In this document: piece after piece, positions 6,815 to 61,520 of the stretch
Layout of the letters: each line of letters starts with the position of its first letter
Position numbering within the stretch: the stretch's first letter is position 1
The notes under the pieces: model-generated
The model's input: the letters and a program-made list of their open reading frames with translations, nothing else
Told to the model about the DNA's origin: nothing
Databases searched by the model: none
Made by a program: the position numbers and the translations under genes
IMG/VR virus record: IMGVR_UViG_3300028800_000001
Span: 263,296 to 327,295 of that record
Length of the DNA stretch: 64,000 nucleotides
Reading direction: 5' to 3' (one strand)

Positions 6815-9800
6815 AAAGTGTCTCCATTCAAAATGGTTTTGCCTACACGGGTTGCTGTTCTATTTAAAACTACCAGAAAGTCAGCACGTTTATTGATCGA
6901 ATCTACATGAGAGCGATCAACATAAATGGCATCATAGCCCTTCATTGCGGCGTAGCGACCAGGATCGTTGGCAAGATCAAAGAGCCGATCAATGCGGCGT
7001 GACTCCGTATACTTCCCAGCATCATCCAAGGCTTTGCCCCGTGTACGCAAATCATTCTTGTAGTCAATCCACTCATTGATTAAACGTCCCTTCTCAATTG
7101 CGGTGGTATTTTTGAGTACGGACATATGCAGCACATCATCGCCATAAGTAGCGGCCACATGAGACGCACTATATCGGTCAGATACTCCTTCTGTGGTAAG
7201 CGCGGTATAGGTTCCGTTGCCATAGACGCCAAGTCCTGCAAAATAGTGCCCACTTTGATAGCTTGCAGCATAGCCCAGGCCGTCAGAGGGATCACCACCA
7301 TCATCCACACCGCGATAGAGCTCAGCCTCACCGTCTTTAATGTGCTGCGCAAGCACATTATCTTCAACCACATGTGGAGGGCCATCAAACCCCTGTGCTT
7401 TATAGATTTCCTGTAAGCAGGCGTCGGCATCCGTGGCGCTACTGCTTCCTGGGATTGGGCCTTTGCCTGTATCCATATAGTTTTTGACGTAGGGAATATC
7501 TTCAGGGTTGCTATATTTGGCTTCCGTCTTCTGAAATTCCTGGTTATCAGGGTGTTTCGGTCCTTTCTCGCGGGTACCATCAGCATGCACAAGCAGGTGT
7601 GCATTTTCTGTCGTGGTAAATTTCCCTACGTGATCATGCGCAGGGTTGTACTTTTCTTCAAACTGCTCAACACTTTTTGTTCCTGAGACGCGGTAAGAAA
7701 TGCCTTTGGCTTTGAGTTGTGCCTCAAGCGGTGGTGTAAGCTCATAATCATTATGAAACACAATTTCTGCAATAGTTGAGGTGTTTAGACCACCATGAAA
7801 TTGTGCCTCTGGATAGCCGCGTACATCACTCACGTTTTGGTAGGTCAGTGGATCTGGACCATGCACACTAAAATTGGTATGATCAGGATGCAGCATGCTT
7901 CCTGGCAAGAGATAGCCACCCATACCAAGTGAGTCATCACCTGTCCAGGTGGTTTTTTGCTTCACCTCTGGTTTGAAGCGAACCGCAACGCCTCCATATT
8001 CATCAACAGAGTCGAACATGCCATGCCGCGTCTGTCTCAGGCTTGCGCCGTCAGGATGATCGCTTAGATAGCCGTAAAGTGGACGCTGCTCTTTGGCAAG
8101 ATCGTCTGGATAGCCAAAGAGATCATGTTCTGCTTCAGAACGTGAATCGTGATCCATAATTCCCGCAGAGGTATTGGTTTCAAATTGCGACTTGAAGCGT
8201 TCATCATCCAATATCTTTGAAAGAATTGTTGGGCGTACCCGCATCCAAGGTTCTGCATTCTTGAGCAGTTCCACGGCTTTGTCATCAACGGCTTTGTTGT
8301 ACTCTTCAGCCGTCATGTTATGCGTCTGCGCATGCTTTTCAGCGAACGCTGCACCTTGTATGTCATATTTTTTGAGGACGGCGTCTGGTGGACGCACCTG
8401 TTCTAAGATATCTTTTTTCTGATTATCAGGATGCGCCGGTCCTTTTTCAGTGGTACCATCACGATGCACTAAAAGGTGGGCATTTTCGGTGGTCGTAAAT
8501 TGTCCATTGTGCCCGTGGGCTGGATTATATTTCGCTTCGCCTGTGAGCAGCTCTTGATCACGTGCGGATAAATCTTCTAGCGATTGCACACCCATCAAAC
8601 GATTGAAAAAGTCCTGACGCTCTGCGAGTGTCCAAGAGGCCGCAACAGGGCCAGCAAGAAACTTTTCTACCAGTGGTACTAGATCAGGGGCAAGCGTATC
8701 AGGGATTGTGTTAATGGCTTGATTTTCTGCATCAGTGATTTGATCTTTATGTTCTGGGGTATCATCATCTATTTCCTCGTCATTTTGCTTCTCCTCTGGT
8801 AAATACAATGAAAGATCAAGTGGTTCATGCATCTTGCCGTGGCTGCGATGCCCTGGCTTTTTGCGCGGCACAGGGATAACGCCATGAGCAGGTTTGCCGT
8901 GAGGAGCCGCATGTGGTTTTGCAGCAGGTGCGCCGTGAGCAGCAGCAGGTTTCTTGAGTGGCTTCACGCTCGTTGGCACTGCTGGATGCTTTGGTGGCAT
9001 TCCACCGGTTTGTGACTCAGGGTGTGCCGTAATCTTGAAAAAGTCTTCCCAGGTGGGATTCTTCATTCCAGCTAGCTGATGCAAAATCTCAAAACGTTTT
9101 GCGAAACCTAACGCTGCTTCATCATTGGCTGCATACTCTTTTGAGAGGATCAGGGCTTTGGTTTCTTTGGTGAGAAACTTTCCCAGGATGCCATGATCAA
9201 TGCTGTTGCGCAGAAAACTTTTTCCAATGACTTTCATCAGAAAGCTATGCGACTGGATTGCAATATCTTTTTTGACGAGTGCCGAAGAAAGTTGTGTCAG
9301 GTTAATCTTGCCGGTCTTTTGATTGAGGGTATAGTGTCCAGATTGATCTTGTTTCATGCCAAGAATATATTCCAACATGCCGACTTTGGTCACCTGATCA
9401 GGGGGCATTTTCTCCATTGCCTCGGTTGCCGTCTTATCATCCAGGGGAGTGCTTTTTACATCCTCAGAGACCACTACGGGCTCTTTGTCCACTGTTCCAC
9501 TGTGGACTACAGGCACCGTATCAGAGGCTCCTACCAGATCTGCAATGCGGCTTGCACCGGTCTGTGAAAAGGCAATGCGCGTGCTACCAGTGGGCACAAT
9601 ACGATACGTCTTGCCATTAATGTTGGCGGTATAGACGCCGTCAGCCCCTCTGGTCATTGCCCCTTTGTCGGAGAGGGCTTTCGCAATGTGGGCAGGCATG
9701 GTGGTGAGCACATCAGCGTGCACACCGCCTGCGCCATCATCAGCACCGATGAATTGTCCGGTCGTAGTGCTGTGATTACGGTTATATTTTTCTTCAGGAA

Positions 9801-9870
9801 GATAGAGTGTAAGGTCAGGTTTCTCCTGTTCTTCTATCTCTTTACGAAAGAGAGCATAATGATACTTCAT
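6811..9870 (-). CDS. Multidomain polyprotein: degenerate kinase-like domain, DUF3626-like domain and C-terminal ART-like domain, separated by KYN motifs
   Basis: Three KYN..H...G.F motifs; central RFKSQFET/RPLYGYL/YPEAQFHGG; C-terminal LYRGV...GVYGNGTY...GYDAI...VVLNR. Confidence 0.7.
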   Translation of the reverse strand: MKYHYALFRKEIEEQEKPDLTLYLPEEKYNRNHSTTTGQFIGADDGAGGVHADVLTTMPAHIAKALSDKGAMTRGADGVYTANINGKTYRIVPTGSTRIAFSQTGASRIADLVGASDTVPVVHSGTVDKEPVVVSEDVKSTPLDDKTATEAMEKMPPDQVTKVGMLEYILGMKQDQSGHYTLNQKTGKINLTQLSSALVKKDIAIQSHSFLMKVIGKSFLRNSIDHGILGKFLTKETKALILSKEYAANDEAALGFAKRFEILHQLAGMKNPTWEDFFKITAHPESQTGGMPPKHPAVPTSVKPLKKPAAAHGAPAAKPHAAPHGKPAHGVIPVPRKKPGHRSHGKMHEPLDLSLYLPEEKQNDEEIDDDTPEHKDQITDAENQAINTIPDTLAPDLVPLVEKFLAGPVAASWTLAERQDFFNRLMGVQSLEDLSARDQELLTGEAKYNPAHGHNGQFTTTENAHLLVHRDGTTEKGPAHPDNQKKDILEQVRPPDAVLKKYDIQGAAFAEKHAQTHNMTAEEYNKAVDDKAVELLKNAEPWMRVRPTILSKILDDERFKSQFETNTSAGIMDHDSRSEAEHDLFGYPDDLAKEQRPLYGYLSDHPDGASLRQTRHGMFDSVDEYGGVAVRFKPEVKQKTTWTGDDSLGMGGYLLPGSMLHPDHTNFSVHGPDPLTYQNVSDVRGYPEAQFHGGLNTSTIAEIVFHNDYELTPPLEAQLKAKGISYRVSGTKSVEQFEEKYNPAHDHVGKFTTTENAHLLVHADGTREKGPKHPDNQEFQKTEAKYSNPEDIPYVKNYMDTGKGPIPGSSSATDADACLQEIYKAQGFDGPPHVVEDNVLAQHIKDGEAELYRGVDDGGDPSDGLGYAASYQSGHYFAGLGVYGNGTYTALTTEGVSDRYSASHVAATYGDDVLHMSVLKNTTAIEKGRLINEWIDYKNDLRTRGKALDDAGKYTESRRIDRLFDLANDPGRYAAMKGYDAIYVDRSHVDSINKRADFLVVLNRTATRVGKTILNGDTL

Positions 9871-17713: not shown

Positions 17714-18306
17714 CCTAGCCTCGTGATATCCACCAATGATAAGAGGACACGAAAACGCTCTGTGTCATCGGGCGCAACAATATGGCGCATGAGCCGTTCA
17801 TAGCGTTCTTTTATTTCTGGTGTAACACGCAAACGAATATACACTTCTTCTTTGGTTTCAAAAAAGATTTCCTGCTGTTCTAGCTTTGGCATACGGCTAT
17901 TTTGTAACAGCTTTTGTAGCTCACCATCATCGTAGCCTACAGAGAAGAGGTCAAACCCTTGCTGCTCTTGCAAGAGGTCAAGGAGCGCTACTTCATCATC
18001 TTCTGCCAGTTGGCTCAGGCGATTATCTGCTACCATGATTGCATTGATTTCAGTCGGTGCAAGATCTGGTGGCAAAATATCGATGTGTACCTCCTGTGCC
18101 CCTTCAGCACGCATTGCCTCCACCATTCCGTGTCCAGCTACAATAAGGTAGGTATTGGGCGCGCCTTGCTGCACAACAATACTACGGAATTGTCCAAAAC
18201 GCCGGTAACTGGCTTGTAAGTGTTTCATCTGTTTGGCTGGATGATGGCGATAATTGCCAGGGTGCGGATGTAGTTGCGTGAGGGCAACCCGTTTATTGGT
18301 GATCAT
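17710..18306 (-). CDS. ParB/Srx-like protein with possible C-terminal ribbon-helix-helix
   Basis: Likely start MITNKR; HPGNYRHH, RFGQ, IVAGHG, VADNR; YIRLRVTPEIKERY. Confidence 0.75.
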   Translation of the reverse strand: MITNKRVALTQLHPHPGNYRHHPAKQMKHLQASYRRFGQFRSIVVQQGAPNTYLIVAGHGMVEAMRAEGAQEVHIDILPPDLAPTEINAIMVADNRLSQLAEDDEVALLDLLQEQQGFDLFSVGYDDGELQKLLQNSRMPKLEQQEIFFETKEEVYIRLRVTPEIKERYERLMRHIVAPDDTERFRVLLSLVDITRLG

Positions 18307-19141
18307 GTTGCACCTTCTCAATGGTACTTTGTAATCGTTTTTCCTCACGCTCGGTACGCTTCTGGCGAATGCGTTGCATTTCTTGCCCAAGAGGCAAACA
18401 TTTCCACATACTTTGCAGTGAATAGTACACAATAGAGTAGCGATAGCCATCAGGGCGCGTTTGTGCAATAGGGGTTACCCCATGCAACAGGTTTTGTCCA
18501 TCGAACATGACCAGTGAATTATTTTTAACAGCAATGCCAAAGTTATATTCAGGAACCGACAAAAGACCACCACTGGTTCCTGCGCGAAAGACCAGCATAT
18601 TTGACCAGACGTGTTTGAAGTTTCCTGCATCAAAGTGATACGCCAGTGGGTTGTTTTTATTAATAATGCCAGAAGTAAAGACAGAGCGCTCAAGTGTCCA
18701 GTCTGGCAACACTTTTTCCACCTGCTGTTCGTGGTAACTATAGAGCTCTGGATTGTAGCGCTCGTAATAGGTTGCAACACGCTTTGCGTAGGACGTAATC
18801 AGGGCATGCGCCTGCGCACTATCGCGAGCCAGAGAAGAAACGGTACAAAAATCATCACGAATGGTGATGCGTGGACGAAAACCAAAGATACGACTTCGCG
18901 TCTTCATTCCACTGGTGCGCTCTTGCTCACGATACTCAATGCGCTTCAGGCAGTCAGTGATTGCACGACAATCATCATCGAGCTCTAGGTAGACAATAGA
19001 GACGCGTCCACTTTCTGCGTCGCGCACCACTGTAGACGTTTCAATGCGTTCTGCAAAGTCGGCTTCTGTGGCACTACGGAAGCGATAGGATTGCAAATCA
19101 ATGACACCGCGTGTGCGTGTCATCACCTGTGGCTCTTGCAT
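18293..19141 (-). CDS. TET/JBP-like 2OG-Fe(II) dioxygenase (copy 1)
   Basis: YHFDAGN, LHGVTP, RYSIVYY; close paralog of 15757..16626. Confidence 0.8.
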   Translation of the reverse strand: MQEPQVMTRTRGVIDLQSYRFRSATEADFAERIETSTVVRDAESGRVSIVYLELDDDCRAITDCLKRIEYREQERTSGMKTRSRIFGFRPRITIRDDFCTVSSLARDSAQAHALITSYAKRVATYYERYNPELYSYHEQQVEKVLPDWTLERSVFTSGIINKNNPLAYHFDAGNFKHVWSNMLVFRAGTSGGLLSVPEYNFGIAVKNNSLVMFDGQNLLHGVTPIAQTRPDGYRYSIVYYSLQSMWKCLPLGQEMQRIRQKRTEREEKRLQSTIEKVQHDHQ

Positions 19142-19995
19142 TACGCCTCCACTGGCATTGGCTCAAGGGCATGTTCTTTGGCATAGAGCCGTAAGAACTC
19201 AGTAAAGACATCCGTATTGGTATCCAGTTGCCATTTTGCCCTGGCCTGTGAAAGGACATTCATCACCCAAATATATTCCTCTTGTGAATAAATCAGCACA
19301 ATCTGGCGAATAGTTGTGGTGTTATAGGTATGTAAGAAGTCTTGTGGAGTGGTGCCAATAATTTGTTCGGGGGCCGCAAAGACGGTGGTTCCTTTTTCGT
19401 CAGAAGTGGCAACGGTTCCTGGTGCATACACAGGGCTATAAGGTGCTGGCGTAAAAAGTGGATTATGCGGGGCTGGAGGACCATCATCCTCTTCCTCAAT
19501 ATATTCTTGATTGACACGCATGGACTCACGAATAGCGCTTTGCGCTTCTTCTTGTCCACCAAAGGCCATTTCCTCTAGCATACGTGCCATATCTTGCTCA
19601 GAAGTTCCTAGCGACAAAAGGTCAGCACCAATGGTAGCTTGCTCACGGAGTAGCGCGAGTAACTTCTCTTGATCATCGTGGCCTGCGTCGCTGAGCTTAT
19701 TGTCAGCAACCAGATAGCCAGAGACCATGCTGTCGTCCCAGGACGCAGGCAAGAGATCCGCACGTAGCTCTTGATAACCTAAACGGCGTGCCGCTTCGAA
19801 GACGCCATGACCAGCGACCAGCAAATAGGTACCATCAGGCTGTTCTTGACACACGATACTTCTGCCTTGTCCAAAGCGGGTGAGGCTAGAAGCAATATTG
19901 CGTAGTTGTGTTTCGGTATGGACACGATAATTCTTGGGATTTGGACGCACCGCAGAGAGGGCAATGCGATGGTTTTCTTTCAGCATTTCTATCAT
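19141..19995 (-). CDS. ParB/Srx-like N-terminal domain protein
   Basis: NPKNYRVH, RFGQ, LVAGHG, YLVADN; C-terminal IRQIVL shared with 16607..17440. Confidence 0.8.
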   Translation of the reverse strand: MIEMLKENHRIALSAVRPNPKNYRVHTETQLRNIASSLTRFGQGRSIVCQEQPDGTYLLVAGHGVFEAARRLGYQELRADLLPASWDDSMVSGYLVADNKLSDAGHDDQEKLLALLREQATIGADLLSLGTSEQDMARMLEEMAFGGQEEAQSAIRESMRVNQEYIEEEDDGPPAPHNPLFTPAPYSPVYAPGTVATSDEKGTTVFAAPEQIIGTTPQDFLHTYNTTTIRQIVLIYSQEEYIWVMNVLSQARAKWQLDTNTDVFTEFLRLYAKEHALEPMPVEA

Positions 19996-25983: not shown

Positions 25984-28560
25984 ATGGCACTAGCACTCGC
26001 ACCGCGACCATATCAGCAAGAAGCATTTGATGCGATTATGGCACAGAATATCAAAGCATTGGTGAAGCTCCCGACAGGGTGCGGGAAAACTTTGTTGTTC
26101 CCGATGTTGGCAAGGCATAAACGTTTTAGCAAAAAGATAACGCTTATTCTGGCAGAGCACGAAGAACTGTTAGAACAGGCCCGTGATAAGATTTTGCGCA
26201 TGTACCCCAATGCTGACGTTGGTATTGTGGGCTTTGGGAAAGCGGAGTGGGACCATCGGATAATTCTAGGGGGCGTGGATACGCTTTCCTATTCAAAGCG
26301 CTTAGAGAAATTGGCAACGCTGGATATCGGGTTAGTTATCTGTGACGAGTGTTTTCCGGCAGGAACACTTGTTGACGGGCGTCCTATTGAGACGTTGAAA
26401 GTTGGTGATACTGTCACGGCGTTTGATGAGAAAACGCAGACGTTTGCACAAAGACGTATCACTTCTGTCTCTCAGAAGTCGGCAGTAAGACTTTTAAAAA
26501 TTATAGTAAATGGTGCATCGGTAGTATGCACGCCAAACCATCCATTTTACACTGAATCTGGATGGAAATATGCTGAGAACATTTTGGTAGGAGAGAGAAT
26601 ACTGTATGCAAATCTTACTAGCAACGTGCCCGATTTGCGAGCAACAATTTCCGGTGTTGGAAAGTCACAAGCGAATCAAGTTCAGGAAAGGAATTCCAGT
26701 GTTTTGCTCACCAACATGCACAAAGATTGCAGTCTCAAAGATGAATTCAGAGAGAATGGCGAAGACAAACAAGAAATATGCTTCGCAGCGTATGAGAAGA
26801 AACAATCCGATGCGCAACGAATCTTCGAGAAAGAAAATGAGATCAACTTTGGTGGCAATGGGACATGTTCCGAAGATTCGTGGGGGCAACGGAAAAGGAT
26901 TAACAGTTCCGCAGCGGCTTTTGTTCGAGAGACTTGGTTGGGAACCGAAAGAAACTATTGTGAGAACGAACATAGTGAAAGCGGAGAATCTAGAGCGGTA
27001 TCCAACACATTACAAGGTGGACATTGGCAACGAAGCGCTGATGATAGCTATAGAAATCGATGGGGGGTCTCATTATTCGATAATGAGGAGAAAACAGGAC
27101 GCGAAGAAAACGAAGTTTCTTGTTGGAAGAGGGTGGACGGTATTGAGGTTTACGAACCAGGAAGTGATGGAACATTTGGAGGATTGTGTCCAGGCGGTTC
27201 AGTCTACAATTTTGAAGTCGAAGACCTCCATACCTATACAGCAAATGGCTTCGTAGTTCATAACTGCCATCATGCGGTCACCAAGAGCTATCTAGATATC
27301 TTTGCGGCCTGCAAAAATGCTTTTTTGTATGGCAATACTGCAACGGTGGATCGCCATGATCAGCGTGACATTACGGCTATCTTTGGCCCACCGGTTTACA
27401 GTAAATCTATTAATGAAATGATTGATGCCGAATATCTTTGTGGCATCGTTCCTTTTACTATTCGAACACAGAACACCATCAATGTTGCGGTTTCTGCAAC
27501 CTCTGGTGATTATAGTGAAGCGCGGCTGGAGCAGGCCGTCAATCGAAAGGATCGTAATGATTGCATCGTTCGGGCGTGTTGTGAAGAAAAGTATGGTGGA
27601 CCTGATTTGCCTACTGTTGTCTTTTGTGCTGGTACGCAGCATGCGAAAGAGCAGGCTTTGGCATATGTTCGAGCAGGAATACCTGCCGCGCATATTACGA
27701 TGGATGTTCCCAAAGAAATTCGTGAACAGCATTATGCTGATTTTGCTACCGGCGCAATTAAAGTCCTCACCAATGTCCAAATTCTTACTGAAGGATGGGA
27801 CGCGGATGTACGAAGGATTGTGTTTGCCCGTCCTACAAAAAGTCGCCCTCTCTTCACTCAAATGCTGGGGCGCGGGACTCGTATCGCTCCTGGTAAGGAA
27901 GCTTGTATTCTCTTAGATTTTACCGACAATTATCTTGACCATGATCTTGAGCCCTGCACACTAGAAGATGTTCTTGGTGTACCAGTACGCGAAGGGGTGG
28001 ATTGCCGAGAGGTTATTCGTAAAGAGAAGGAGGCCAGTGGTGGCGCGGTTCCTGAAGACGGTGAAGAGAAGAAAAAGCGTGAGAAGCAGGAAATTGACGA
28101 GCGCAACAAACTGGTTGAGAAGCAGCTCACGTTCCGCTACAAGTGGCAGCAGGTGCAAGGTGGCGCATACATTGCCACCGTTGGCGATAAGCGTGCCGGA
28201 GGCGATTTGATCCTCTACCCATCAAAAGCCGGTGGTTATATCGTCGGGGTCTCCTATAAAGAAACACCAATGGCAAAGCAACCAAAAGAGGTGGTGGTTG
28301 CAAGAAACGTGCCGCTTTCCTGGGCTCAATCAATTGCAGAGCAGCAAGGGAAAAACTTGCAACTGGGCAATTATCAATTTATTGATCCTGATGCTCCCTG
28401 GCGGAAAAGTAAGCCATCGCAGGCGCAACTTGACCAAATCAAAATGCTTTCAAAAGCAACTTATGGGAAAATTCTTCCAAAGAAGAATATGACCAAGGGT
28501 GAAGCTTCAGAACTGATCTCTAAAGGGTTTGCGCTCTTGCAGCAAAAAGGGAGAAAGTAA
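25984..28560 (+). CDS. Superfamily 2 DEAD/DEAH helicase (Irc3/UvsW-like) containing an intein
   Basis: RPYQ, LPTGCGKT, DE[intein]CHH, TAT, LTEGWD, QMLGRGTR. Confidence 0.9.
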   Translation: MALALAPRPYQQEAFDAIMAQNIKALVKLPTGCGKTLLFPMLARHKRFSKKITLILAEHEELLEQARDKILRMYPNADVGIVGFGKAEWDHRIILGGVDTLSYSKRLEKLATLDIGLVICDECFPAGTLVDGRPIETLKVGDTVTAFDEKTQTFAQRRITSVSQKSAVRLLKIIVNGASVVCTPNHPFYTESGWKYAENILVGERILYANLTSNVPDLRATISGVGKSQANQVQERNSSVLLTNMHKDCSLKDEFRENGEDKQEICFAAYEKKQSDAQRIFEKENEINFGGNGTCSEDSWGQRKRINSSAAAFVRETWLGTERNYCENEHSESGESRAVSNTLQGGHWQRSADDSYRNRWGVSLFDNEEKTGREENEVSCWKRVDGIEVYEPGSDGTFGGLCPGGSVYNFEVEDLHTYTANGFVVHNCHHAVTKSYLDIFAACKNAFLYGNTATVDRHDQRDITAIFGPPVYSKSINEMIDAEYLCGIVPFTIRTQNTINVAVSATSGDYSEARLEQAVNRKDRNDCIVRACCEEKYGGPDLPTVVFCAGTQHAKEQALAYVRAGIPAAHITMDVPKEIREQHYADFATGAIKVLTNVQILTEGWDADVRRIVFARPTKSRPLFTQMLGRGTRIAPGKEACILLDFTDNYLDHDLEPCTLEDVLGVPVREGVDCREVIRKEKEASGGAVPEDGEEKKKREKQEIDERNKLVEKQLTFRYKWQQVQGGAYIATVGDKRAGGDLILYPSKAGGYIVGVSYKETPMAKQPKEVVVARNVPLSWAQSIAEQQGKNLQLGNYQFIDPDAPWRKSKPSQAQLDQIKMLSKATYGKILPKKNMTKGEASELISKGFALLQQKGRK
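26350..27264 (+). mobile_element. Intein (305 aa) inserted in helicase Walker B (DE/CH)
   Basis: Starts CFPAGTLV, block B CTPNHPF, ends VYNFEVEDLHTYTANGFVVHN followed by Cys. Confidence 0.9.
26606..27256 (+). CDS. Vsr/DUF559-like endonuclease nested in the intein in the +1 frame
   Basis: CPIC...CSPTC zinc ribbon, YKVDI, IEIDGGSH, DAKK..FL...GWTVLRFTN; AGGAGAG RBS upstream of ATG 26606. Confidence 0.8.
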   Translation: MQILLATCPICEQQFPVLESHKRIKFRKGIPVFCSPTCTKIAVSKMNSERMAKTNKKYASQRMRRNNPMRNESSRKKMRSTLVAMGHVPKIRGGNGKGLTVPQRLLFERLGWEPKETIVRTNIVKAENLERYPTHYKVDIGNEALMIAIEIDGGSHYSIMRRKQDAKKTKFLVGRGWTVLRFTNQEVMEHLEDCVQAVQSTILKSKTSIPIQQMAS

Positions 28561-33621: not shown

Positions 33622-35997
33622 GTGAACAAATACTCAAGGGAGTTTTGTATGCGCCACCTCAAAACATCTGTGACTCTTTTTGCATTATTCTTTGTAGTCT
33701 TCTTTTTGAGTACCTCCACTGTAGCCGCGAAACCTGTAGCTGGTCCTGTCGTACTTTCTGGGGACATCCTTCCTGGTATGAAACCAGTGAGCGGGGCAGT
33801 GGTCAATTTACAAACGTCTATCCCGATAGAGTTATCCCTGTCAGTGCAAAATCAGCCAGGGCTCAATACATTGCTTGCAGAAATCTACAATCCGCAGTCC
33901 ACAGAGTACCATCACTATCTAGCAAAAGGGCAATTTGCTACGATGTTTGGGTCGTCACCTGCGCAACAAACACAAATCAAACAGTTTCTTACCCGTAATG
34001 GCCTGACATTTGATAACTTTGCCAATAGCAACTTATTGGTGCATGCGCATGGTTCACTTGCGGCCATTGATCAGGCGTTTGCCGTGAGCATGCAAACGGA
34101 ACAGATCAAAGGCACGAAGTTCCTGGCGAATACTGTAGAGCCATCGGTGCCAGCAGCAATAGCTCCACTCGTAACAGGTGTGCAGTTAGAACAAGCGCCA
34201 CAATCGCTCTTCGTCAAGCCGCAAGGAAGAACAACTGGTCAACGTTTTCTCACGCCATCAGGGTATGGCCCTGCCGATATTAAGACGGCCTTTAGTGGCA
34301 CGTCTTATCTTGGGACTGGAAGTGGACAAAAGATAGGGGTTGTCGGGTTCGATGTACTTGCAGCTAGTGACATTACTGCCTATGAACGGCAGTACGGTGT
34401 CATTTGTGGCACCTGTAATGTGAGTATAACTACTGTCACTACAGGAAACACCGCAACTGATGTCGATATTGAACAGGCATTAGATTTCGAGCAAATTATC
34501 GCACTCGCGCCATCAGCCACGTATTACTTCTATGACGAGGAAAGAAACGACTTTACTGGATTTCAGGATAATATTGCAACTGTTGCAAGTGCCGACGTGG
34601 TGAACACTGCTAGCTTGAGTTGGGGATGGGATTGTGAACAAGCGCCAGGTTCTACCATAAAATCATCTGTGAATACCTCCCTGGCTACCATGTCCAGTCA
34701 AGGGCAGTCATTCACAGATGCTTCTGGTGACGATGGTTCTGCGCAAGCAGATGTCTGTGGAGGTGGTGTACCTAATGTTGATTACCCTGGAACAGAACCG
34801 AATGCGCTCACAACTGGTGCGGTTCATGTTTCTGCAACGAGCCCACTTGCGCAGACGAATTGGTACGATGTTTCTGATCCCACTCCTGGTTTTCAGTGCA
34901 GTTCTGATCCGGTCTGTGAAAGTGGAGGTGGCGTAAGTACCTACTATGCAGCCCCCGCCTGGCAAACGGGCACAGGAGTCACTGAAGCTACATATAGCCA
35001 AACAGGAACGTATTGTGGACAGAGTACAGGTGTGCATTGTCGAGAGATGCCTGATGTTTCCGGCGATGGAGGCACAGATGGCAGTCTAGTTGGTGATCTT
35101 GCACTTTATGATAGTGGAACATGGGGATTAGTTTTTGGGACAAGTGCCTGTGCGCCGCAATGGGCAGCATTCATCGCCGATTTCAATGCTAGTTCAGGAA
35201 CCACTATTGGGACGCCAATGACTAGCCTCTACGGCTTTTGGAACGCGACCCAGAATGTTGGGTACAACGGTTTTACTGACGTAACCACTGGTTCTTCAGA
35301 TTATTATCCTGTTGGAACTGGATATGATATGGCAACAGGGCTTGGCACCCCGCGCCTTGACCAACTCCTTTGGGACTACGAAGGCTTTTTAGGTTGGGAT
35401 AAATTTGGAAATCGTAACACGATTAGTAGTGGATGGAACGGCACAAAGAACGCGCAGGACGGTCAGGCGTGGGCTGGCGATCCTGTATCCAATGCTGCTT
35501 TTAGCGTACCTGTTGCAGGCGGTGAGGGTGATATCGCGCCTTCTGCCAATACGAACTTCAATGGACAGCTTGGACCATCTAGTAGCGATGATGAGCAAGT
35601 CGTAATTGAGGCGCAGGCGTCTTCATGGACCAGTACCAATCTCGGCGCAGTAGCGAGATGGAGTTCCAACTCGAACTGGTACAGAGCCTACATCAATGGC
35701 ACAAATTTAAAAATTGATAAGCTGGTCGCAGGAACAGCGACCAATCTTGCTACCTTTGGCTTTACCGCATCAACCAGTACAAAATACTGGATTAAGTTCA
35801 AAGTCGTAGGGACCACGCTAGAAGCAAAAGTTTGGGTAGAAGGAGGTTCTGAGCCTGGAAGTTGGCAGGCAACGGTTACTGATTCTAGTTTCTCATCTGG
35901 GAAAGAAGGTATTCGCTTTGGAGTGGGGAATGGAGTGACCGCGAATCTCTTCGCGTTCTATGGAGGCAGTGGTTTGAAGTTTAAGCCAGTAGCATAA
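33622..35997 (+). CDS. Secreted S53 sedolisin/kumamolisin-like peptidase with C-terminal concanavalin-like domain
   Basis: Signal peptide, pro-kumamolisin domain (IYNPQSTEYHHYL), EQALD, SGDDG, PDVS, GTSAC, GYDMATGLGTP. Confidence 0.88.
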   Translation: MNKYSREFCMRHLKTSVTLFALFFVVFFLSTSTVAAKPVAGPVVLSGDILPGMKPVSGAVVNLQTSIPIELSLSVQNQPGLNTLLAEIYNPQSTEYHHYLAKGQFATMFGSSPAQQTQIKQFLTRNGLTFDNFANSNLLVHAHGSLAAIDQAFAVSMQTEQIKGTKFLANTVEPSVPAAIAPLVTGVQLEQAPQSLFVKPQGRTTGQRFLTPSGYGPADIKTAFSGTSYLGTGSGQKIGVVGFDVLAASDITAYERQYGVICGTCNVSITTVTTGNTATDVDIEQALDFEQIIALAPSATYYFYDEERNDFTGFQDNIATVASADVVNTASLSWGWDCEQAPGSTIKSSVNTSLATMSSQGQSFTDASGDDGSAQADVCGGGVPNVDYPGTEPNALTTGAVHVSATSPLAQTNWYDVSDPTPGFQCSSDPVCESGGGVSTYYAAPAWQTGTGVTEATYSQTGTYCGQSTGVHCREMPDVSGDGGTDGSLVGDLALYDSGTWGLVFGTSACAPQWAAFIADFNASSGTTIGTPMTSLYGFWNATQNVGYNGFTDVTTGSSDYYPVGTGYDMATGLGTPRLDQLLWDYEGFLGWDKFGNRNTISSGWNGTKNAQDGQAWAGDPVSNAAFSVPVAGGEGDIAPSANTNFNGQLGPSSSDDEQVVIEAQASSWTSTNLGAVARWSSNSNWYRAYINGTNLKIDKLVAGTATNLATFGFTASTSTKYWIKFKVVGTTLEAKVWVEGGSEPGSWQATVTDSSFSSGKEGIRFGVGNGVTANLFAFYGGSGLKFKPVA

Positions 35998-55118: not shown

Positions 55119-55469
55119 TTATTTTCCTTGTTTGTGATCGCGTAAAAATGTCCAGGTGAGCAGCGTCTCAGTTGTTGTGTGCTGTTGGATGATCAGGCAG
55201 TTGCCGGTTTCCAAGAAACAAAAGCTGGCATCAGGGTAGGTGATAAACAGTTCATAGTGTGGCGTTTCTATAGTGCAGCCTCCACTGTGCTGATCGCTTT
55301 CTTGTTCTATTACCTGTGCGCTCCATATTTCGCGATGACAATCGCTCCACTCATAGCCACCTCTATTTGAGAGCGCATGCCGGTGCAGTGTCCAGAGATA
55401 GCCATCAAGAAGCGCACGCAGCTTTTTATAGAATTGATCTTTGTTCTTATAGGTCAGTGGTTCAAACAC
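55119..55469 (-). CDS. Hypothetical protein
   Basis: GAGGAG RBS; terminator hairpin 55078..55119. Confidence 0.5.
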   Translation of the reverse strand: MFEPLTYKNKDQFYKKLRALLDGYLWTLHRHALSNRGGYEWSDCHREIWSAQVIEQESDQHSGGCTIETPHYELFITYPDASFCFLETGNCLIIQQHTTTETLLTWTFLRDHKQGK

Positions 55470-56028
55470 GTGTTAACTCCTCTTCAAAGTAATTGCTAGA
55501 GCTTCCATCGGGCTCTTCGTAGGTATAGACGGGAACGGCGCGCACATCGTCTGCAATAGTCATATTTTCTGGCGTTACGAGAAAGCAGGCACCTTCATGT
55601 AACCCTTCGAGAATACGGACGTACATGCCTGGGCCATAGGCAAAGCGCTCATGTGCCAGAACGTGATCTTTGAGCACGCTGTCTGTCCAATTGTGGTAGA
55701 GGCCGTGCACCAGCATGCGCACCGATTTGCTGTAAGAGATTGACACCCCAACTGTTCGGTAGTAGTTATCCAGCGCAAGGAGCCGCGCAATCTCTTCTTC
55801 GTTATAATCGCTTTGGCGTTTCGCAAGATACACCGGCTCCGCAAAGCAACCATCAAAGAGACGGTGGCACGCAGGACAGACGCCTTGTCCGTGGTCAAGT
55901 AAAGTGCGCAGAGGATGATAGGTAAAGCCAACATAAAGAAGTTGATCACCGCGCCACTGGCAGGAACAACGATAAAAGCTTGGGTTTGGGTCAAGAATAG
56001 AGGCCAGCGCCTCTGTATACTCATTCAT
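55462..56028 (-). CDS. Zn-ribbon hypothetical protein
   Basis: CSC...CPAC; start MNEYT after GGAG. Confidence 0.5.
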   Translation of the reverse strand: MNEYTEALASILDPNPSFYRCSCQWRGDQLLYVGFTYHPLRTLLDHGQGVCPACHRLFDGCFAEPVYLAKRQSDYNEEEIARLLALDNYYRTVGVSISYSKSVRMLVHGLYHNWTDSVLKDHVLAHERFAYGPGMYVRILEGLHEGACFLVTPENMTIADDVRAVPVYTYEEPDGSSSNYFEEELTRV

Positions 56029-56506
56029 AGGGGGGTCTCCTTTGTACAAAAGAGCTGGCAGGATTTTTCTCCTGCCAGCCAATTACGATTGCTGTTGGTA
56101 GCCTTTGAGGATACCTTCGCGCAGCGCCGCTCTATCCTGGGCTTCTCGAAAGATAGTTTTGACGATGCGTTGAGTAATGGCGTCCTGGGCTTCCTCTGTA
56201 AAGAGGGGGTTGACGACGCGAATACTCATGCCGATAAGTGTTGCGCATTCTTGTAAGAATTGCTGATCCATAGGTCTATTCCTTGATAACTAAAAGTGAG
56301 CACAAAAGTGCTGCAATAAAAAGAAAGGCAAGCATACGTTTGGTAATGCGACCACGTTCGCGGGTATCAATACCAATAGAGATGCCAGCGCTGCTACAGG
56401 CGCTCACAAATCCTAAAAAAAGAAGCAGTCTGGTTCCGCTCACGAGAGGTTCTCCTTTGTTTTCTCTCATTATGCGTTGTAGCGCATCTTTTCTCAAGCA
56501 TGTCTA

Positions 56507-56606: not shown

Positions 56607-56635
56607 TTGCAATAACGGATGGTGTCTGCTATAGT
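56607..56635 (+). promoter_or_regulatory. Promoter for array / Tas-like operon
   Basis: TTGCAA-N17-TATAGT with extended -10 TG. Confidence 0.65.
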
Positions 56636-56674
56636 GAGGATAGAGCGCACTTCAATGATCTTTGCAAAAGCTGC

Positions 56675-56963
56675 GTACGAGCCAAACTGATAGTCGTTTC
56701 ACTGACGGGTTGTGAGCAAGGTACTACGTTTTTTCAAATACCGGATGCGATCCCTGATGAGGTGATTATTCAAATTGAATGCGAGAGTCAGTCAATCAGT
56801 TTTTCAATTTAGAAGTATGAGTCAGAAGAGATTGTTTTTTCAACGTACGCGTACGAAACGAATTCTGCGTCTCTTCGCTTACCAAGCTTGAACCAATTCT
56901 TACGTTTTTCAAAAGTTTCGTGTGAATCAGGAGCATTGTTATCTCAACAAGCTTGTTTGAACC
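56675..56963 (+). repeat. TIGR-like dual-repeat array 1 (~8 units, ~35 nt period)
   Basis: GTRYGARYC-like repeats at 56675, 56710, 56745, 56781, 56815, 56851, 56886, 56920, 56955, alternating with GTTTTTCA-like repeats and 8-10 nt variable segments. Confidence 0.75.
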
Positions 56964-56981
56964 AGAAAGGAACACCAGAGA

Positions 56982-57866
56982 GTGCCCAGAAGTACCATTT
57001 CAAAGAAGTTTAATGATGAGCTCATTGTCGAACTTGGTGAGCCGGAAACGTCCCGCATTACTGAGTTGCGCCTCACCAAAGATTTACAAAAGGCAGCAGC
57101 TCTTCTTGGCCGTGAAGAAGCTCGTTATTACGTTGATATGTACTATAACTTCCAACAATTGCGGATGGGCGCAGGATCACAGATCCGTCAGATGCAGTTG
57201 ATTGGCGAACCATCCATGATGCTTCAGTGGACGTTTACGCTCTATGAGCAGATTGAGAATGATATCAAGAGTGCACTAAGTATCTATGCTAAGGGGAACA
57301 TTGTAGGTCGCTGGGCCATGAGCAATCCTGGCATTGGGCCGGTTATTGCCGCAGGATTACTTGCCCATATTGACATTACCCGCTCGACCTACGCCGGTAA
57401 CCTCTGGAGCTTTGCAGGACTTAATCCAAAGGTGAAGTGGGAGAAGGGGCAAAAGCGCCCCTGGAATGCAGCACTCAAAGTGCTCAGTTGGAAGATAGGG
57501 CAAAGCATGGTGAAAGTATCGAATAACCCCAATAGTGTCTATGGCCCTCTGTATAAGCAGCGCAAAGTCTATGAGCAAGAGAAGAACGAGAACATGGAGT
57601 TTGCTGAGCAGGCAAAAATGATTCTGGCGACCAAGAAAATCGGCAAAGAGACCGAAGCCTACAAATGGTACGCGATGGGTAAGTTGCCCCCTGCGCACAT
57701 CCAGGCGCGTGCCGAGCGCTGGACAACGAAGATCTTTTTGAGCCACTACCATGCGGTTGCCTATGAGATTGAATATAAAAAGCCCAGTCCAGAGCCCTAC
57801 GCCCTGGCGTATCTTGGGCATCAGGATATGATCCCAGTTCCCAATTGGCCTCTGATTGAGGAGTAA
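56982..57866 (+). CDS. IS110/Nop-fold RNA-binding protein lacking a nuclease domain (TasA-like)
   Basis: Coiled coil (YYNFQQLR), PGIGPVIAAGLLAHI, LWSFAGL, WN..LK; no RuvC DEDD domain, no HNH, no IS110 SG loop; flanked by arrays. Confidence 0.72.
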   Translation: MPRSTISKKFNDELIVELGEPETSRITELRLTKDLQKAAALLGREEARYYVDMYYNFQQLRMGAGSQIRQMQLIGEPSMMLQWTFTLYEQIENDIKSALSIYAKGNIVGRWAMSNPGIGPVIAAGLLAHIDITRSTYAGNLWSFAGLNPKVKWEKGQKRPWNAALKVLSWKIGQSMVKVSNNPNSVYGPLYKQRKVYEQEKNENMEFAEQAKMILATKKIGKETEAYKWYAMGKLPPAHIQARAERWTTKIFLSHYHAVAYEIEYKKPSPEPYALAYLGHQDMIPVPNWPLIEE

Positions 57867-57904
57867 GTACTATGATGCGCACATCTTTTTCTGGTGTGCG
57901 CCCC

Positions 57905-60392
57905 GTGTGAATCAAATCAGGAACGCTTCAAACCGCTTGTATGAAGAGATATGTAAGATGTTTGAGTAAAAAATCTTGGTTCTTTCGAAATGACCGTACG
58001 AACGAGTCTTTGCGCTTTTCAAGCAAGGCGTGTGAACAAGAATGACAGTTTTTCAAGGTAGAAGTATGAGTCAGGTGTGTTCGTTTTTTCAGGAAAGGGA
58101 TGCGAGTCTAATTTACAGCGTGTTCAAAAAAAAAGTGTATGAGTAAGACAGGTCTGATCATTCAAGAAAGGTGTACGAACCGCCCATGAGGTGTTTCAAG
58201 TGGTGCGTGTGAACTATTCCTAGCGTGTTTTTAAAATAGCCGTGTGAACCGAATAAGTTGTTTTCCCAATGAAAGGGTATGAATCGCTCCTGGCGTAGAG
58301 CAAAATTACTGTATGAACGATACATCAAGTTGTTTCAAAAAAGTCGCGTGAGCACACACGCTTTGGTTGAGGCAATACATGAGAGCGAATTTTTGGATAT
58401 GGAGAGGGGTCAAGATAGAGGAATGAGTTATCTTTCACCTGCGCTTTCAGAGAAAGGGTACGAATCAGTTTAATCGTCTTTTCATTTCATGAGCATGAGC
58501 GAACTTTTGTGTAGCGTCAAAATTCTGGTGCGAATTCAATTGCAAAGTTTTTCATACAAGTGGTATGAGTCATTCCACCTGGAGGTTCAATTTAACTGTA
58601 CGAGTCGTTTGGAATGCGGTTTCAAGAACGCTGTACGAGTCAAATCACCGGTTTTTCTATGCGGGATGGTGCGAGTCAATTAATATGTTTATCGTAAACG
58701 ATGTGTATGAACGGAAGGCAACGATTTTTTCAGGATATAGGTTTGAAGCAAGTTCCATGTTTTTCGAAGTAACCGTTTGAGCCATTAAGAGCGTCTCGGC
58801 CAGCGAAAAGGTATGAGCAGCAGGGGCAACGAGTGATCAGGACATAGGTGCGAAACACTACATTGATTGTAGCAAAATACCGGTTTGAATCAATTCGCGG
58901 ATGCAATCATTCTAATGGAGTGAGCAAACTATCAAAGTGGTTTCAATTAGTAGGTGCGATTCTTGTCCTGGGTCGTTTCTCAAGACACGTGAGAGCCAAG
59001 GAAAGTGGAGATCAATTTGTGGAGGCGAACCAATACGACAGTGTTTCATGGTTTACGTCTGAGCAGATATAAGGGATTTCTCATATCATATATACGAAAC
59101 AAGAAGCCAGTTTTCACGATTGACGTTTGAGTAAGAATTATTGTTTCTTCATAATGTACGTACGATTCATCTATCTAGTGTGTCAAAATTCAAGTAAGAG
59201 TCAGCAAGCCAGTTTTCACGGTTAACGTTTGAGTAAGGTGAAAGTTTTTTTCATAGCACAGGTACGAAACGAGAAGCCAGTCTCTCCATAATTGACGTTT
59301 GAACGCCATTCAGCAGTAATGCAGATGTGAGCCATGCTCCAGATACTTTTCATAAAGGGAGAGCGAGTCAATTGTATGTCGCTGCAATACATTGTTGTGA
59401 ATGAATGTAAGACGTACCTTCAAAGCGAGCGTATGAGTAAAAGGTTCAGTTGTCTCAAACTATGAGTACGAATGGATGGAATACGTGGCGCACCAAATTA
59501 AGCGTATGAGCAAAACGGTAAGGTTACTTCAGGATGAGTGAGCGAGTTCGAATAAGGGTAAGACTCAGTTTGTAGGTACGATCCAGGTTCCATGTAGACG
59601 CAAATAAGGGAGAGAGCCACTAAAAAGGTATGATCATCTAAGGGGAACGATCCATGTTAGCTGTCCGGTCACTGATCTGGTGTGAATAAACGCGGCTTGT
59701 TTTGAACAAATAGAAGGTATGAACTATTAGCGATGTATACTTCTTAGAAGGAGATTGAGTTCTTTACGATGTGCTTTCAGATTATTGGTACGAATTATTG
59801 GCGAAGTCTTTTCATAAAAGCCGAATGAGCAAGCAATGCTGTTTTTCAAATTGCTGGTGTGAGCAGATAGCTTTAGTTTTTCATAATCGGCGTGTGAGTC
59901 TTATAATGAGTCTGTTTGTACATGGTGCACGAGCCAACCATTCTGTAGAACAAAAAGGTGACGCGAATCATTTCTAAGGCGAGTTCAAGTATAATGTGTG
60001 AGTCGCAATGAGAAGTGCAGACAAATTGCATGTACGAATTGCAAAAGGTGTATACACAAGAGAATCGTGTGAGTCAGGAATTGTGTTTTTTCAAGTTGTA
60101 GCTACGAGTTATGATAAAAGTGTCTTTCAACTAAGCAGTGCGAACACAGGATAATTGTAGTGTAAGAAACTGGTGTGATCCTTGATAGTAGTCTTTTTAT
60201 TCAACTAGCGAGAAGCAAGAAAAGCCGTCTCCATCAATAAAGAAGTTTGAACGAAGCATGATGTTTCTTTCATGTAGGTAAGTGAATCAGTCGCTATGTG
60301 TTTCAAAATAAATGTATGAGTCCAGCGAGCTGTCGTATCAGATGTTGTCTACGAAACAACAATTATGTTATTACAAAATCCTTGTTTGAACC
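57905..60392 (+). repeat. TIGR-like dual-repeat array 2 (~70 units, ~35 nt period)
   Basis: Repeat starts e.g. 57996, 58030, 58064, 58100, 58137, 58173, 58207, 58242, 58277, 58311 ... last at 60384; unit count estimated from span/period. Confidence 0.8.
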
Positions 60393-60405
60393 GAAAGGAG
60401 TTCGT

Positions 60406-61326
60406 ATGGTTGCATCCTATGCTCCAGAGCAACTGGAGAAAAGTGCGAGAAATTTACTGGCGTGCGCCAAGTGGATGCTTGCCGAAAAGCAGGCGCGGCT
60501 GAAGGAAAACCGTCCGGCCATGAAAGAGGCGGAAATTGACAAGAATACCCGCGAGCTTTTTGGCACCAATTGGGGCTCTGCCTATAATGCGCTCAAGATC
60601 TTAGAGAAACTTGGCGAAGAGTACATTGAAAAGGCCATCAAGCGGGGCATTGCTTTCAGTGCGTTGTATGCCTTTACTCATGAGGATGATCCGCAGTATG
60701 CTTATGACCTTGTGACAGAAGCTCTTGCTCGCGAAGAGATTGTCGGTCGCCCAAGTCACGATAAGCTTTTTGATTATCTCAAAAAGCTTCCTAAAGAAAT
60801 GAAAGCGCGGCCACCGGTAGAAGAGCGGGAGCCAGAAAATACACAGACAGAGGAAACCGAAAGCGCAGATCTTTCCGCACTCGATAGTCTCTTGAGCCCC
60901 TATCAGACGCGTCAAAAGCCCTACGTAAAGCCACAACACGGTCTGGTCATCATGAAGACACCAGCGCACCTGCCTATTTCTCGTGGACGGCGCGCCGTCA
61001 TTGATAGCCGCAATGAGCTGACCGAAGAGTCGCTTGCCCATATGAAGATCTACCTTGTGGCGCAAGCCAGCAACGGGAGAGTCTACGTTTCACGGCACTG
61101 GTCCTGGCTTACGATGGAACATTTTGCGCGTGAGAATAAGAAGAACGTCAACAAAGAAGAGTATATCAATAAGCGCTGCAAAGAGATGCGCGCTGCCCTT
61201 GAAGTCGATTTTAAAAAGCGAGGACTCTATCTGGTCTTTTCCGAAGAAGTACTTTCTGCGGCCCGTGACCACATCGTCCAGTTCCTCCGCAAAAAACATT
61301 ATATGGTAGGAGAGTACAAAGAATGA
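60406..61326 (+). CDS. Hypothetical protein directly after array 2 (possible HTH)
   Basis: AAAGGAG RBS immediately after last repeat, ATG 60406. Confidence 0.65.
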   Translation: MVASYAPEQLEKSARNLLACAKWMLAEKQARLKENRPAMKEAEIDKNTRELFGTNWGSAYNALKILEKLGEEYIEKAIKRGIAFSALYAFTHEDDPQYAYDLVTEALAREEIVGRPSHDKLFDYLKKLPKEMKARPPVEEREPENTQTEETESADLSALDSLLSPYQTRQKPYVKPQHGLVIMKTPAHLPISRGRRAVIDSRNELTEESLAHMKIYLVAQASNGRVYVSRHWSWLTMEHFARENKKNVNKEEYINKRCKEMRAALEVDFKKRGLYLVFSEEVLSAARDHIVQFLRKKHYMVGEYKE

Positions 61327-61520
61327 AAGATGAACTAAAAATAGAGACCTGGAGTATGGAAGATTTAAGTGCCCAGGTGACAATTTCGCCAGAGCTCTTT
61401 TCTGAAGAGATTGATGTCATCCAGGTGAAACGTGGCGAGAAAAGCGTCCTCGCCATTGTTCCTTGGGAGCTTTTTATGGAGATGTTGAGAAAACTGACGC
61501 TAGAAAAAATGGAGGAGTAG
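61323..61520 (+). CDS. Small protein, Phd/YefM-like fold possible
   Basis: IQVKRGEKSVLAIVPWELF; ATGA overlap. Confidence 0.45.
   Translation: MKDELKIETWSMEDLSAQVTISPELFSEEIDVIQVKRGEKSVLAIVPWELFMEMLRKLTLEKMEE

Follow-up and report, generated by a model that had tools for sequence, protein, structure and literature searches.

A dual-repeat TIGR-TasA locus with about 78 array units in a 327-kb phage contig

TIGR-Tas systems were described in 2025 (Faure et al. 2025, PMC12045711), and 20,096 tas loci have been catalogued. In their dual-repeat TIGR-TasA form, edge and loop repeats alternate with two short spacers at a period of about 36 nucleotides (nt), and processed tigRNAs are bound by TasA (PMC12045711). 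Here we analyze a locus of this kind in the last 64 kb (hereafter the window) of IMGVR_UViG_3300028800_000001, a 327,295-bp viral contig of a jumbo phage. A gene for a nuclease-free TasA of 294 amino acids (aa), flanked by arrays that together hold about 78 units, forms a genuine, well-formed dual-repeat TIGR-TasA locus of a known kind, with a long array and a lineage-specific operon layout.

Several described systems share parts of this design. Dual-repeat TIGR-TasA loci such as FpTIGR of Flavonifractor plautii have in common with the window a solo, nuclease-free Nop-domain Tas, the alternating edge and loop repeats, the two short spacers, arrays on both sides of tas and a phage setting (PMC12045711); the window departs from the typical locus in its ~78 units, 8+8-nt spacers and 10-nt edge, in a loop conserved at its GT and CA ends only, and in arrays that end in a ribosome-binding site and a gene. 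The best structural match of the window protein, SpTasH of Salicola phage CGphi29 (PDB 9w03, 9w04, 21kl; E 1.3e-8), resembles it in a 16-nt total guide, an edge processed as ...GCG/AGCCA... (the slash marks the cut) and a Y289/H296 pair, but carries an N-terminal HNH domain and cuts DNA, whereas at the corresponding place the window TasA has some 46 residues of poor order. TaTasR (PDB 9mty) has an edge, UGCG/AGCCA, close to the URYG/ARYCA of the window; it differs from the window system by the RuvC nuclease at its N-terminus, by spacers of 9 nt and by UG...CCA boxes that are well conserved. In TasA-TasParB operons (PMC12045711, fig. S14), as in the window, tasA shares an operon with an accessory gene, repeats are 10 nt long and dual-repeat arrays lie upstream, downstream and between genes. 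Their accessory protein, however, has a ParB/Srx N-terminal domain and a DGFHR motif, whereas orf306, the gene that follows the downstream array of the window, encodes a protein only weakly similar to the helix-turn-helix (HTH) of ParB. IS110 recombinases (IS621, ISCro4) share with TasA a Nop-like RNA-binding and coiled-coil fold and the Transposase_20 motif, but they possess a DEDD domain and a single bridge RNA, and TasA fails their family model. CRISPR-Cas, which has cas genes and one repeat of 25-36 nt between spacers of similar size, was ruled out by the two alternating short repeats, the 8-nt spacers and zero PADLOC matches for TasA and its neighbors.

Relative to this record, only array length stands out as unusual. 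It is normal for arrays to lie upstream of tas, downstream of it or on both sides (PMC12045711; preprint 10.64898/2026.09.09.750476), and the abstract of the latter preprint already describes TIGR repeats as lacking the conservation of CRISPR repeats. Thus the flanking arrays and the degenerate repeats, both considered unusual in a preliminary description made from the sequence of the window, do not set the locus apart, and its novelty is less than was then assumed, the family being already published and curated. The great length remarked on in the same description is another matter. Unit number is 'most often 5 to 15' (PMC12045711) and dual-repeat arrays average ~16 units (65,635 tigRNAs in 4,126 arrays; preprint 10.64898/2026.09.09.750476), which makes ~78 units a length outlier at several times the typical number. 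Among related loci, designated here by L numbers, units number ~5 in L009, ~9 in L003, 17 in L012, ~31 in L007 and at least 38 in L011, whose contig ends inside the array. The arrays of these relatives were read directly; a generic periodicity scan at lags 32-40 was set aside as too noisy, because coding regions give lags in multiples of 3. The L007 array (31 units, GTGTGAACCA / GTGAAACCCA, 8-nt spacers) has the design seen in the window, and so do those of L003 and L009, which likewise accompany relatives of TasA.

Array anatomy and protein family

The autocorrelation of positions 57900-60392 is highest at lag 35, where it reaches 0.339 (mean over lags 0.262, standard deviation 0.021), and harmonics appear at 69-70 and 104-106; in the tasA gene and the following 2.5 kb there was codon periodicity only. 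The 342 nt upstream of tasA behave in the same ~35-nt manner as the downstream array. Against 300 dinucleotide-preserving shuffles, periodicity scored z = 9.7 in the downstream array and 3.8 in the upstream array. Tandem Repeats Finder reported nothing in either array because the copies are too unlike, and Rfam returned zero family matches there. Since the repeats are too degenerate for these tools, we resolved the units with a position weight matrix (PWM) chain parse. It placed 9 units upstream (56639-56954) with a terminal edge at 56955, and 69 units downstream (57960-60383), preceded by ragged units at 57907 and 57941 and closed by a terminal edge at 60384, for a total of 78 units of 32-40 nt with a mode of 35. 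The first upstream unit, at 56639, is a degenerate leader, and the upstream edges that begin at 56675, 56710, 56745, 56781, 56815, 56851, 56886, 56920 and 56955 correspond to ~8 predicted tigRNAs. The period of ~35 nt and the ~8 plus ~70 units of the preliminary description are therefore borne out statistically and by the parse.

Each unit opens with a 10-nt edge (GTRYGARYCA); spacer A (8 nt), a loop of 8-10 nt (GT...(T)CA) and spacer B (8 nt) follow in that order. The length of spacer A follows from a GT that occupies positions 19-20 in 43 of the 78 units and is shifted downstream by one base in another 14. Among the 59 units whose loop is T-rich, 50 have a spacer B of exactly 8 nt, and in 62/78 units CA stands exactly 8 nt ahead of the next edge. 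Spacers are thus 8+8 nt rather than the ~9 and ~8 nt first proposed. The G5-A6 step of the edge is present in all but one unit (77/78). Binding by a symmetric dimer would require edge and loop to share a box D-like start and a box C-like end. A box D-like GT begins 51/78 edges and 57/78 loops (8- or 9-nt spacer A counted), and a box C-like CA ends 62/78 loops but just 29/78 edges (A alone, 51/78), so that the expected pattern is there in outline but box C of the edge is weak. The repeats are strand-specific: GTNYGAR occurs on the + strand at 17.1 per kb within the arrays versus 0.79 per kb elsewhere, and only 3 matches fall on the - strand of the arrays. The longest open reading frame (ORF) within the 2.5-kb downstream array encodes 74 aa. 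Over 57960-60383, spacer A has 37.8% GC and spacer B 36.1% GC (39% A), as compared to 46.7% GC in the rest of the window. The AT-richness of the spacers may stem from the composition of the targets, from a requirement for sites that melt easily, or from drift.

TasA matched the NCBIfam model NF052498 (TIGR_Tas_endo) with 184 bits (cut-off 100; 3.6e-54), residues 47-260 aligning with profile positions 1-214 of 215. By contrast, the IS110 model NF033542 scored 24.6 bits versus a cut-off of 140 and covered just residues 90-151. Pfam detected a 40-residue Transposase_20 motif alone (1.8e-5), and PHROG 4285, annotated 'transposase', aligned with TasA end to end (1.7e-45). Among PDB sequences the best phmmer matches were TaTasR (9mty_A, 1.1e-13, query residues 50-293) and SpTasH (1.7e-10), and 2722 TasA homologs were retrieved, mostly of 265-300 aa. 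An AlphaFold2 model built with 29 homologs (predicted local distance difference test [pLDDT] 85; predicted template modeling [pTM] score 0.81) is helical throughout, two long helices spanning residues 44-74 and 79-104. Searched with Foldseek against the PDB, it gave TasH and TasR as its 11 best matches (E 1.3e-8 to 2.7e-5, template modeling score up to 0.72); the IS621 and ISCro4 recombinases came next at E ~3e-3, some five orders of magnitude weaker. Pfam yielded no HNH or RuvC nuclease match in TasA at E up to 1. Because the ORF is bounded by an upstream stop that sets 294 aa as its maximum, because only ~46 poorly ordered residues precede the Tas core, and because no nuclease family is matched, we identify the protein as TasA. 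Both the TIGR-Tas-like assignment and the nuclease-less protein of Nop/IS110 type that had been read from the sequence are upheld by the family models and the structural ranking.

A processing pair is conserved in this protein. Tyr273 and His280 align with Y289 and H296 of SpTasH, which catalyze pre-tigRNA processing (PMC13421893), and among the 29 aligned homologs the Tyr is present in 24 and the His in all 29. Such a Tyr/His pair, located on the C-terminal loop, is treated as a hallmark of dual-repeat Tas proteins (preprint 10.64898/2026.09.09.750476).

Several homologs of TasA have features of their own. P0019 (399 aa, 52% identical to TasA) has a C-terminal HNH domain at residues 336-381; the HNH domain of TasH is described as N-terminal (PMC12045711), and that of P0019 may be an independent nuclease fusion. 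The TasA homolog of a related phage (L012:1-624) is interrupted by an intein (Pfam Intein_splicing, 1.6e-4), the C-terminal splicing motif of which ends in HN-C immediately ahead of the conserved WKIGQS stretch of the Tas core. The sections of the TIGR-Tas papers that we consulted contain no mention of an intein in a tas gene. In another phage contig, L008 (10001-12107), tasA lies directly 5' of a TnpB/Cas12f-like gene (OrfB_IS605 plus Cas12f1-like_TNB), and a second TnpB/Cas12f-like gene lies 7 kb away (17814-19637), which puts two unrelated RNA-guided systems side by side.

Predicted processing and guide-directed binding

Published tigRNAs indicate where the edges of the window might be cut. 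The oligonucleotide table of PMC12045711 gives TaTasR tigRNA1 as AGCCA, a 9-nt spacer, UGAAACCCA, a 9-nt spacer and UGCG, and SpTasH tigRNAs as AGCCA, N8A, AGACAACCA, N8A and AGCG. From these mature ends the published edges are UGCG/AGCCA and AGCG/AGCCA, and the window edge, (G)URYG/ARYCA, has the design common to both. Because the edge core YG/ARYCA matches the published ends, we predict a cut between the invariant G5 and A6, and mature guides would by analogy be 34-36 nt long. Target geometry was derived from the same table; the target strand of TaTasR reads spacer A and then the reverse complement of spacer B (PMC12045711). Guide-dependent repression of reporter and chromosomal genes by a TasA has been reported (preprint 10.64898/2026.09.09.750476), which is the kind of role, programmable DNA binding and silencing, put forward in the preliminary description.

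Homology to these systems suggests how transcription, processing position, DNA binding, repression and targeting might be organized at the window locus. A single + strand transcript starting at ~56640 would probably comprise the upstream array, tasA, the downstream array and orf306. TasA dimers would bind every unit at both ends of its edge and loop repeats, namely at the box D-like GU and the box C-like CA, and the loop containing Tyr273 and His280, or else a host RNase, would cleave the edges between G5 and A6. The products would be ~78 tigRNAs of 34-36 nt, each made up of ARYCA, 8-nt spacer A, loop, 8-nt spacer B and GURYG. The resulting ribonucleoprotein is predicted to recognize ~16 bp of DNA, one strand of which would carry spacer A and, after it, the reverse complement of spacer B. 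Its binding without cutting may block, at loci of the host or of a competitor, either transcription or some other DNA transaction. The activity proposed by analogy with the published systems is thus RNA-guided binding without cleavage, most likely in the form of repression. If edges are indeed cut at G5/A6, the 5' ends of the tasA and orf306 mRNAs would be made by processing (56955-56981 and 60384-60405, respectively). Taken as a whole, a dual-repeat TIGR-TasA in a jumbo-phage contig that operates by this proposed guide-directed binding is, in our judgment, highly probable.

Operon layout and the downstream gene orf306

The features of the locus are listed in Table 1. The preliminary description had placed the arrays under one promoter. 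The consensus scan found a single consensus-like site (56607-56635) that agrees with 9 of 12 consensus positions and has TG ahead of its -10 hexamer; that one promoter would serve the whole locus is suggested by this single site. On the - strand there are a divergent promoter-like site (56535-56507) and a convergent terminator (61535-61513). The hairpin behind the tasA stop codon has a predicted folding energy of -18.1 kcal/mol (z = -3.4; 0 of 200 shuffles as stable) and could act as a stabilizer or partial attenuator. Counterparts of orf65 with 61-65 aa were called in L004, L005, L010 and L011, the position being kept in the related phage, and orf65 is likely the operon end.

Table 1. Features of the TIGR-TasA locus, numbered from the first position of the window
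Feature	Position	Strand	Description or basis
sigma-70-like promoter candidate	56607..56635	+	TTGCAA, 17 nt, TG-extended TATAGT; directly 5' of the upstream array
upstream TIGR array	56675..56964	+	chain parse; periodicity z = 3.8
tasA, 294 aa, nuclease-free, coiled coil + Nop domain	56982..57866	+	GTG start; NF052498
hairpin, no U tract, just 3' of tasA stop codon	57877..57901	+	RNA fold
downstream TIGR array, ~70 units, period 34-37 nt	57907..60393	+	autocorrelation, shuffles z = 9.7, unit table
orf306	60406..61326	+	co-directional; start 12 nt past last edge repeat
orf65	61323..61520	+	ORF list; overlaps orf306 stop

Both arrays close with an identical terminal edge, GTTTGAACC, and directly behind it come the ribosome-binding site GAAAGGA and then a start codon. 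Upstream, the terminal edge GTTTGAACCA at 56955 leads through GAAAGGA to the GTG start of tasA; downstream, the terminal edge GTTTGAACCG at 60384-60393 is followed by the ribosome-binding site and start of orf306. No terminator-like site was found at 60390-60410 or after either array. A TIGR array typically ends in a truncated edge and a rho-independent terminator (PMC12045711), and the arrays of the relatives L007 and L003 do have terminators. That both arrays run straight into a ribosome-binding site rather than a terminator is new here, as is a 327-kb phage as host of a TIGR-TasA locus.

orf306 gave zero sequence matches in Pfam, PHROG, PADLOC, NCBIfam or the PDB, including none to the ParB family in Pfam, NCBIfam or PDB sequences, and its translation lacks the DGFHR motif of the described TasParB. 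Among 5.8 billion proteins searched it has just 2 close homologs, both encoded directly 3' of arrays of the same design as that of the window. When 1.84 billion representatives were searched with a profile, a single further protein (537 aa) came up; it lacks Pfam domains, and the 180 nt preceding its gene hold no array. The AlphaFold2 model of orf306 is poor (pLDDT 60). Its N-terminal helical domain shows a weak resemblance to the ParB type, the Foldseek neighbors being all DNA-binding domains of ParB, Noc, Spo0J and SopB at non-significant scores (E 0.14-3). We regard orf306 as a candidate accessory gene, lineage-specific and new here.

At the DNA level, a 24-kb query showed zero similarity to INPHARED phages by megablast, and there are no tRNA genes in the window. 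Neighboring genes in the window encode an intein-bearing helicase and an Amidase_2 endolysin. The helicase is an 858-aa DEAD/ResIII protein (25984-28560) with PT-HINT and Intein_splicing matches between its helicase motifs. A 36-nt periodicity at 8716-9136, inside a 1019-aa ORF on the - strand (6811-9870), is probably a 12-residue coding repeat and not an RNA array. The pro-kumamolisin activation domain (6.1e-22) of a 791-aa protein (33622-35997) points to a peptidase of the sedolisin type, an unusual phage cargo.

Array conservation, targets and competing explanations

Relatives at two distances permit a view of how the array changes. L005, from another sample, is 100% identical to the window over 17 kb. 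Over the same length L004 differs by 47 substitutions and 2 indels, with 5 differences in the upstream array and 0 in the 2.5-kb downstream array. Differences elsewhere are patchy, as at 55457-56242; because they are clustered, array stability relative to L004, and the absence of spacer turnover at that distance (0.3% genome divergence), are only suggestive. The interval 57171-61313, which contains the 3' part of tasA, the downstream array and orf306, has zero differences from L004 over 4.1 kb.

L010 and L011 derive from a more distant phage, in which orf306 has 56% protein identity. Their array has a 168-nt block in common with the window at 95.8% identity and then diverges. Within the diverged part, four units retain 13-15 of 16 spacer bases in altered order (window partners at 60067, 60138, 60245 and 60280), with 0.044 spacer pairs of at least 13/16 expected by chance. 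Across the four pairs, spacers are identical at 57/64 positions and edges at 25/40 (Fisher p = 0.0025), a contrast that is partly built in since the pairs were picked by spacer identity; the edges agree no better than random edge pairs do (5.7/10). Neutral common descent is disfavored, because edges would then be as similar as spacers. Repeats that drift around guides kept at 13-15 of 16 bases in related phages are new here.

Similar guides also occur within the window array, where 4 spacer pairs match at 12/16 or more versus 0.34 expected. Of 22 pairs matching at 10/16 or more, 10 lie within 5 units of each other (12.5% expected, p = 1.4e-4), and a two-unit block at 59092 recurs at 59194 with 47/68 bases identical. 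This local clustering of similar guides, also new here, suggests growth by duplication, and the interpretation we favor is that the array has grown by local duplication while selection maintained particular guides. The comparison with L004, L010 and L011 favors fixed, selected targets and duplication over rapid spacer acquisition. A broader proposal can be built on these observations. The array would be not an immune memory but a large, slowly evolving regulatory guide library that changes by local duplication and unit shuffling, with guides under purifying selection while repeats drift, the reverse of CRISPR. Cleavage of terminal edges by TasA would make the 5' ends of the tasA and orf306 mRNAs, and expression of the effector and of orf306, as a new DNA-binding partner in an accessory role, would thereby be coupled to guide maturation. 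We offer this joint reading tentatively and consider it fairly unlikely in its entirety.

Targets were sought in the window plus 3.9 kb, with four geometries, gaps of 0-3 and up to 2-3 mismatches. In these 68 kb of phage sequence, about 21% of the genome and the part scanned with all guides and with mismatches allowed, the true geometry gave, with arrays masked, no site with one mismatch or fewer at gaps 0-3, and 2-mismatch counts equaled those of three control geometries without excess. The search of the self genome for paired spacer matches, advised in the preliminary description, was thus negative over the 68 kb. For two of the conserved guides, exact predicted sites with gaps of 0 and 2 were also sought in IMG/VR. 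These scans returned 104, 79, 18 and 24 scattered matches, which is chance level; none of the matches listed (80 of the 104 in one scan) lies in the 327-kb contig itself. In wider collections of 596 Gb, hundreds of chance occurrences of a 16-nt site would be expected. Both results weigh against the TIGR-TasA reading with guide-directed binding, and three further points do so. Every box position is present in just 42/78 units, and many units may therefore be inactive, the strict pattern fitting 18/78. The arrays lack the terminator of typical arrays in PMC12045711. Finally, MbTasA, the repressor that was tested experimentally, is not known to be close to the window TasA.

The incomplete units raise the question of whether the TIGR-TasA is in decay, its long array being mostly a fossil of duplication and drift in which a minority of units give working guides. 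At least one box position is missing from 36/78 units, and the excess of similar near neighbors, the duplicated block at 59092 and 59194 and the AT-rich spacers (36-38% GC) all fit such a history. Yet the G5-A6 step is nearly invariant, spacer B keeps its 8 nt in most units, some guides are better conserved than the repeats around them, and the 2.5-kb array is identical in two strains despite 47 differences between them over 17 kb. Because the two relatives of the lineage likewise have loops of the form GT-N-CA in which the interior varies, the weakness of the loop consensus is a lineage trait and not a sign of decay. We find decay of the array somewhat unlikely. Guides that are stable between strains and partly conserved between diverged phages are what fixed regulatory targets would lead one to expect, and these could belong to the phage itself rather than to host or competitor DNA, as in temporal control of the jumbo-phage program; regulation of the viral life cycle is among the options named in preprint 10.64898/2026.09.09.750476. 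The target search speaks against this: the 68 kb gave no site with one mismatch or fewer and no excess over the controls at two, and the matches listed for the two conserved guides include no exact site in the 327-kb contig. Regulation of the phage's own genes seems quite unlikely to us.

Two other explanations would deny the repeats a role as guides, wholly or in part. The 35-bp repeats might be centromere-like or iteron DNA bound by the ParB-HTH-like orf306 product, as F sopC is by SopB, given that orf306 follows such arrays in all three known occurrences and that ParB, Noc, Spo0J and SopB domains are its nearest structural neighbors. However, those neighbors come from non-significant matches to a poor model, orf306 lacks the TasParB motif, arrays of the same design accompany TasA homologs in phages without orf306, and the strand-specific repeat fits published tigRNA edges, all of which makes an iteron very unlikely. 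That the protein is a remnant of an IS110-family transposase, flanked by unrelated repeats, might be thought from the Transposase_20 motif and from PHROG and some database entries that call its relatives 'transposase'. This is exceedingly improbable, being refuted by failure of the IS110 model and by the missing catalytic domain: no DEDD/RuvC N-terminal domain is present (no DEDD_Tnp_IS110 match), the ORF leaves no room for one, and TasH and TasR match the fold far better than IS621 and ISCro4 do.

Identification of the locus as a dual-repeat TIGR-TasA leaves the concept of TIGR-Tas systems unchanged. It nonetheless provides a useful natural case, with ~78 guides in one operon of a 327-kb phage, for questions that are open in the TIGR-Tas literature: the natural targets of guides, the role of nuclease-free TasA in phages, and how arrays originate and change without adaptation genes. 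Near-identical and moderately diverged relatives allow the window array to be compared, and the conserved gene 3' of the array, orf306, is a candidate accessory factor. If terminal edges are cut as predicted, this processing would tie guide maturation to the expression of tasA and orf306.

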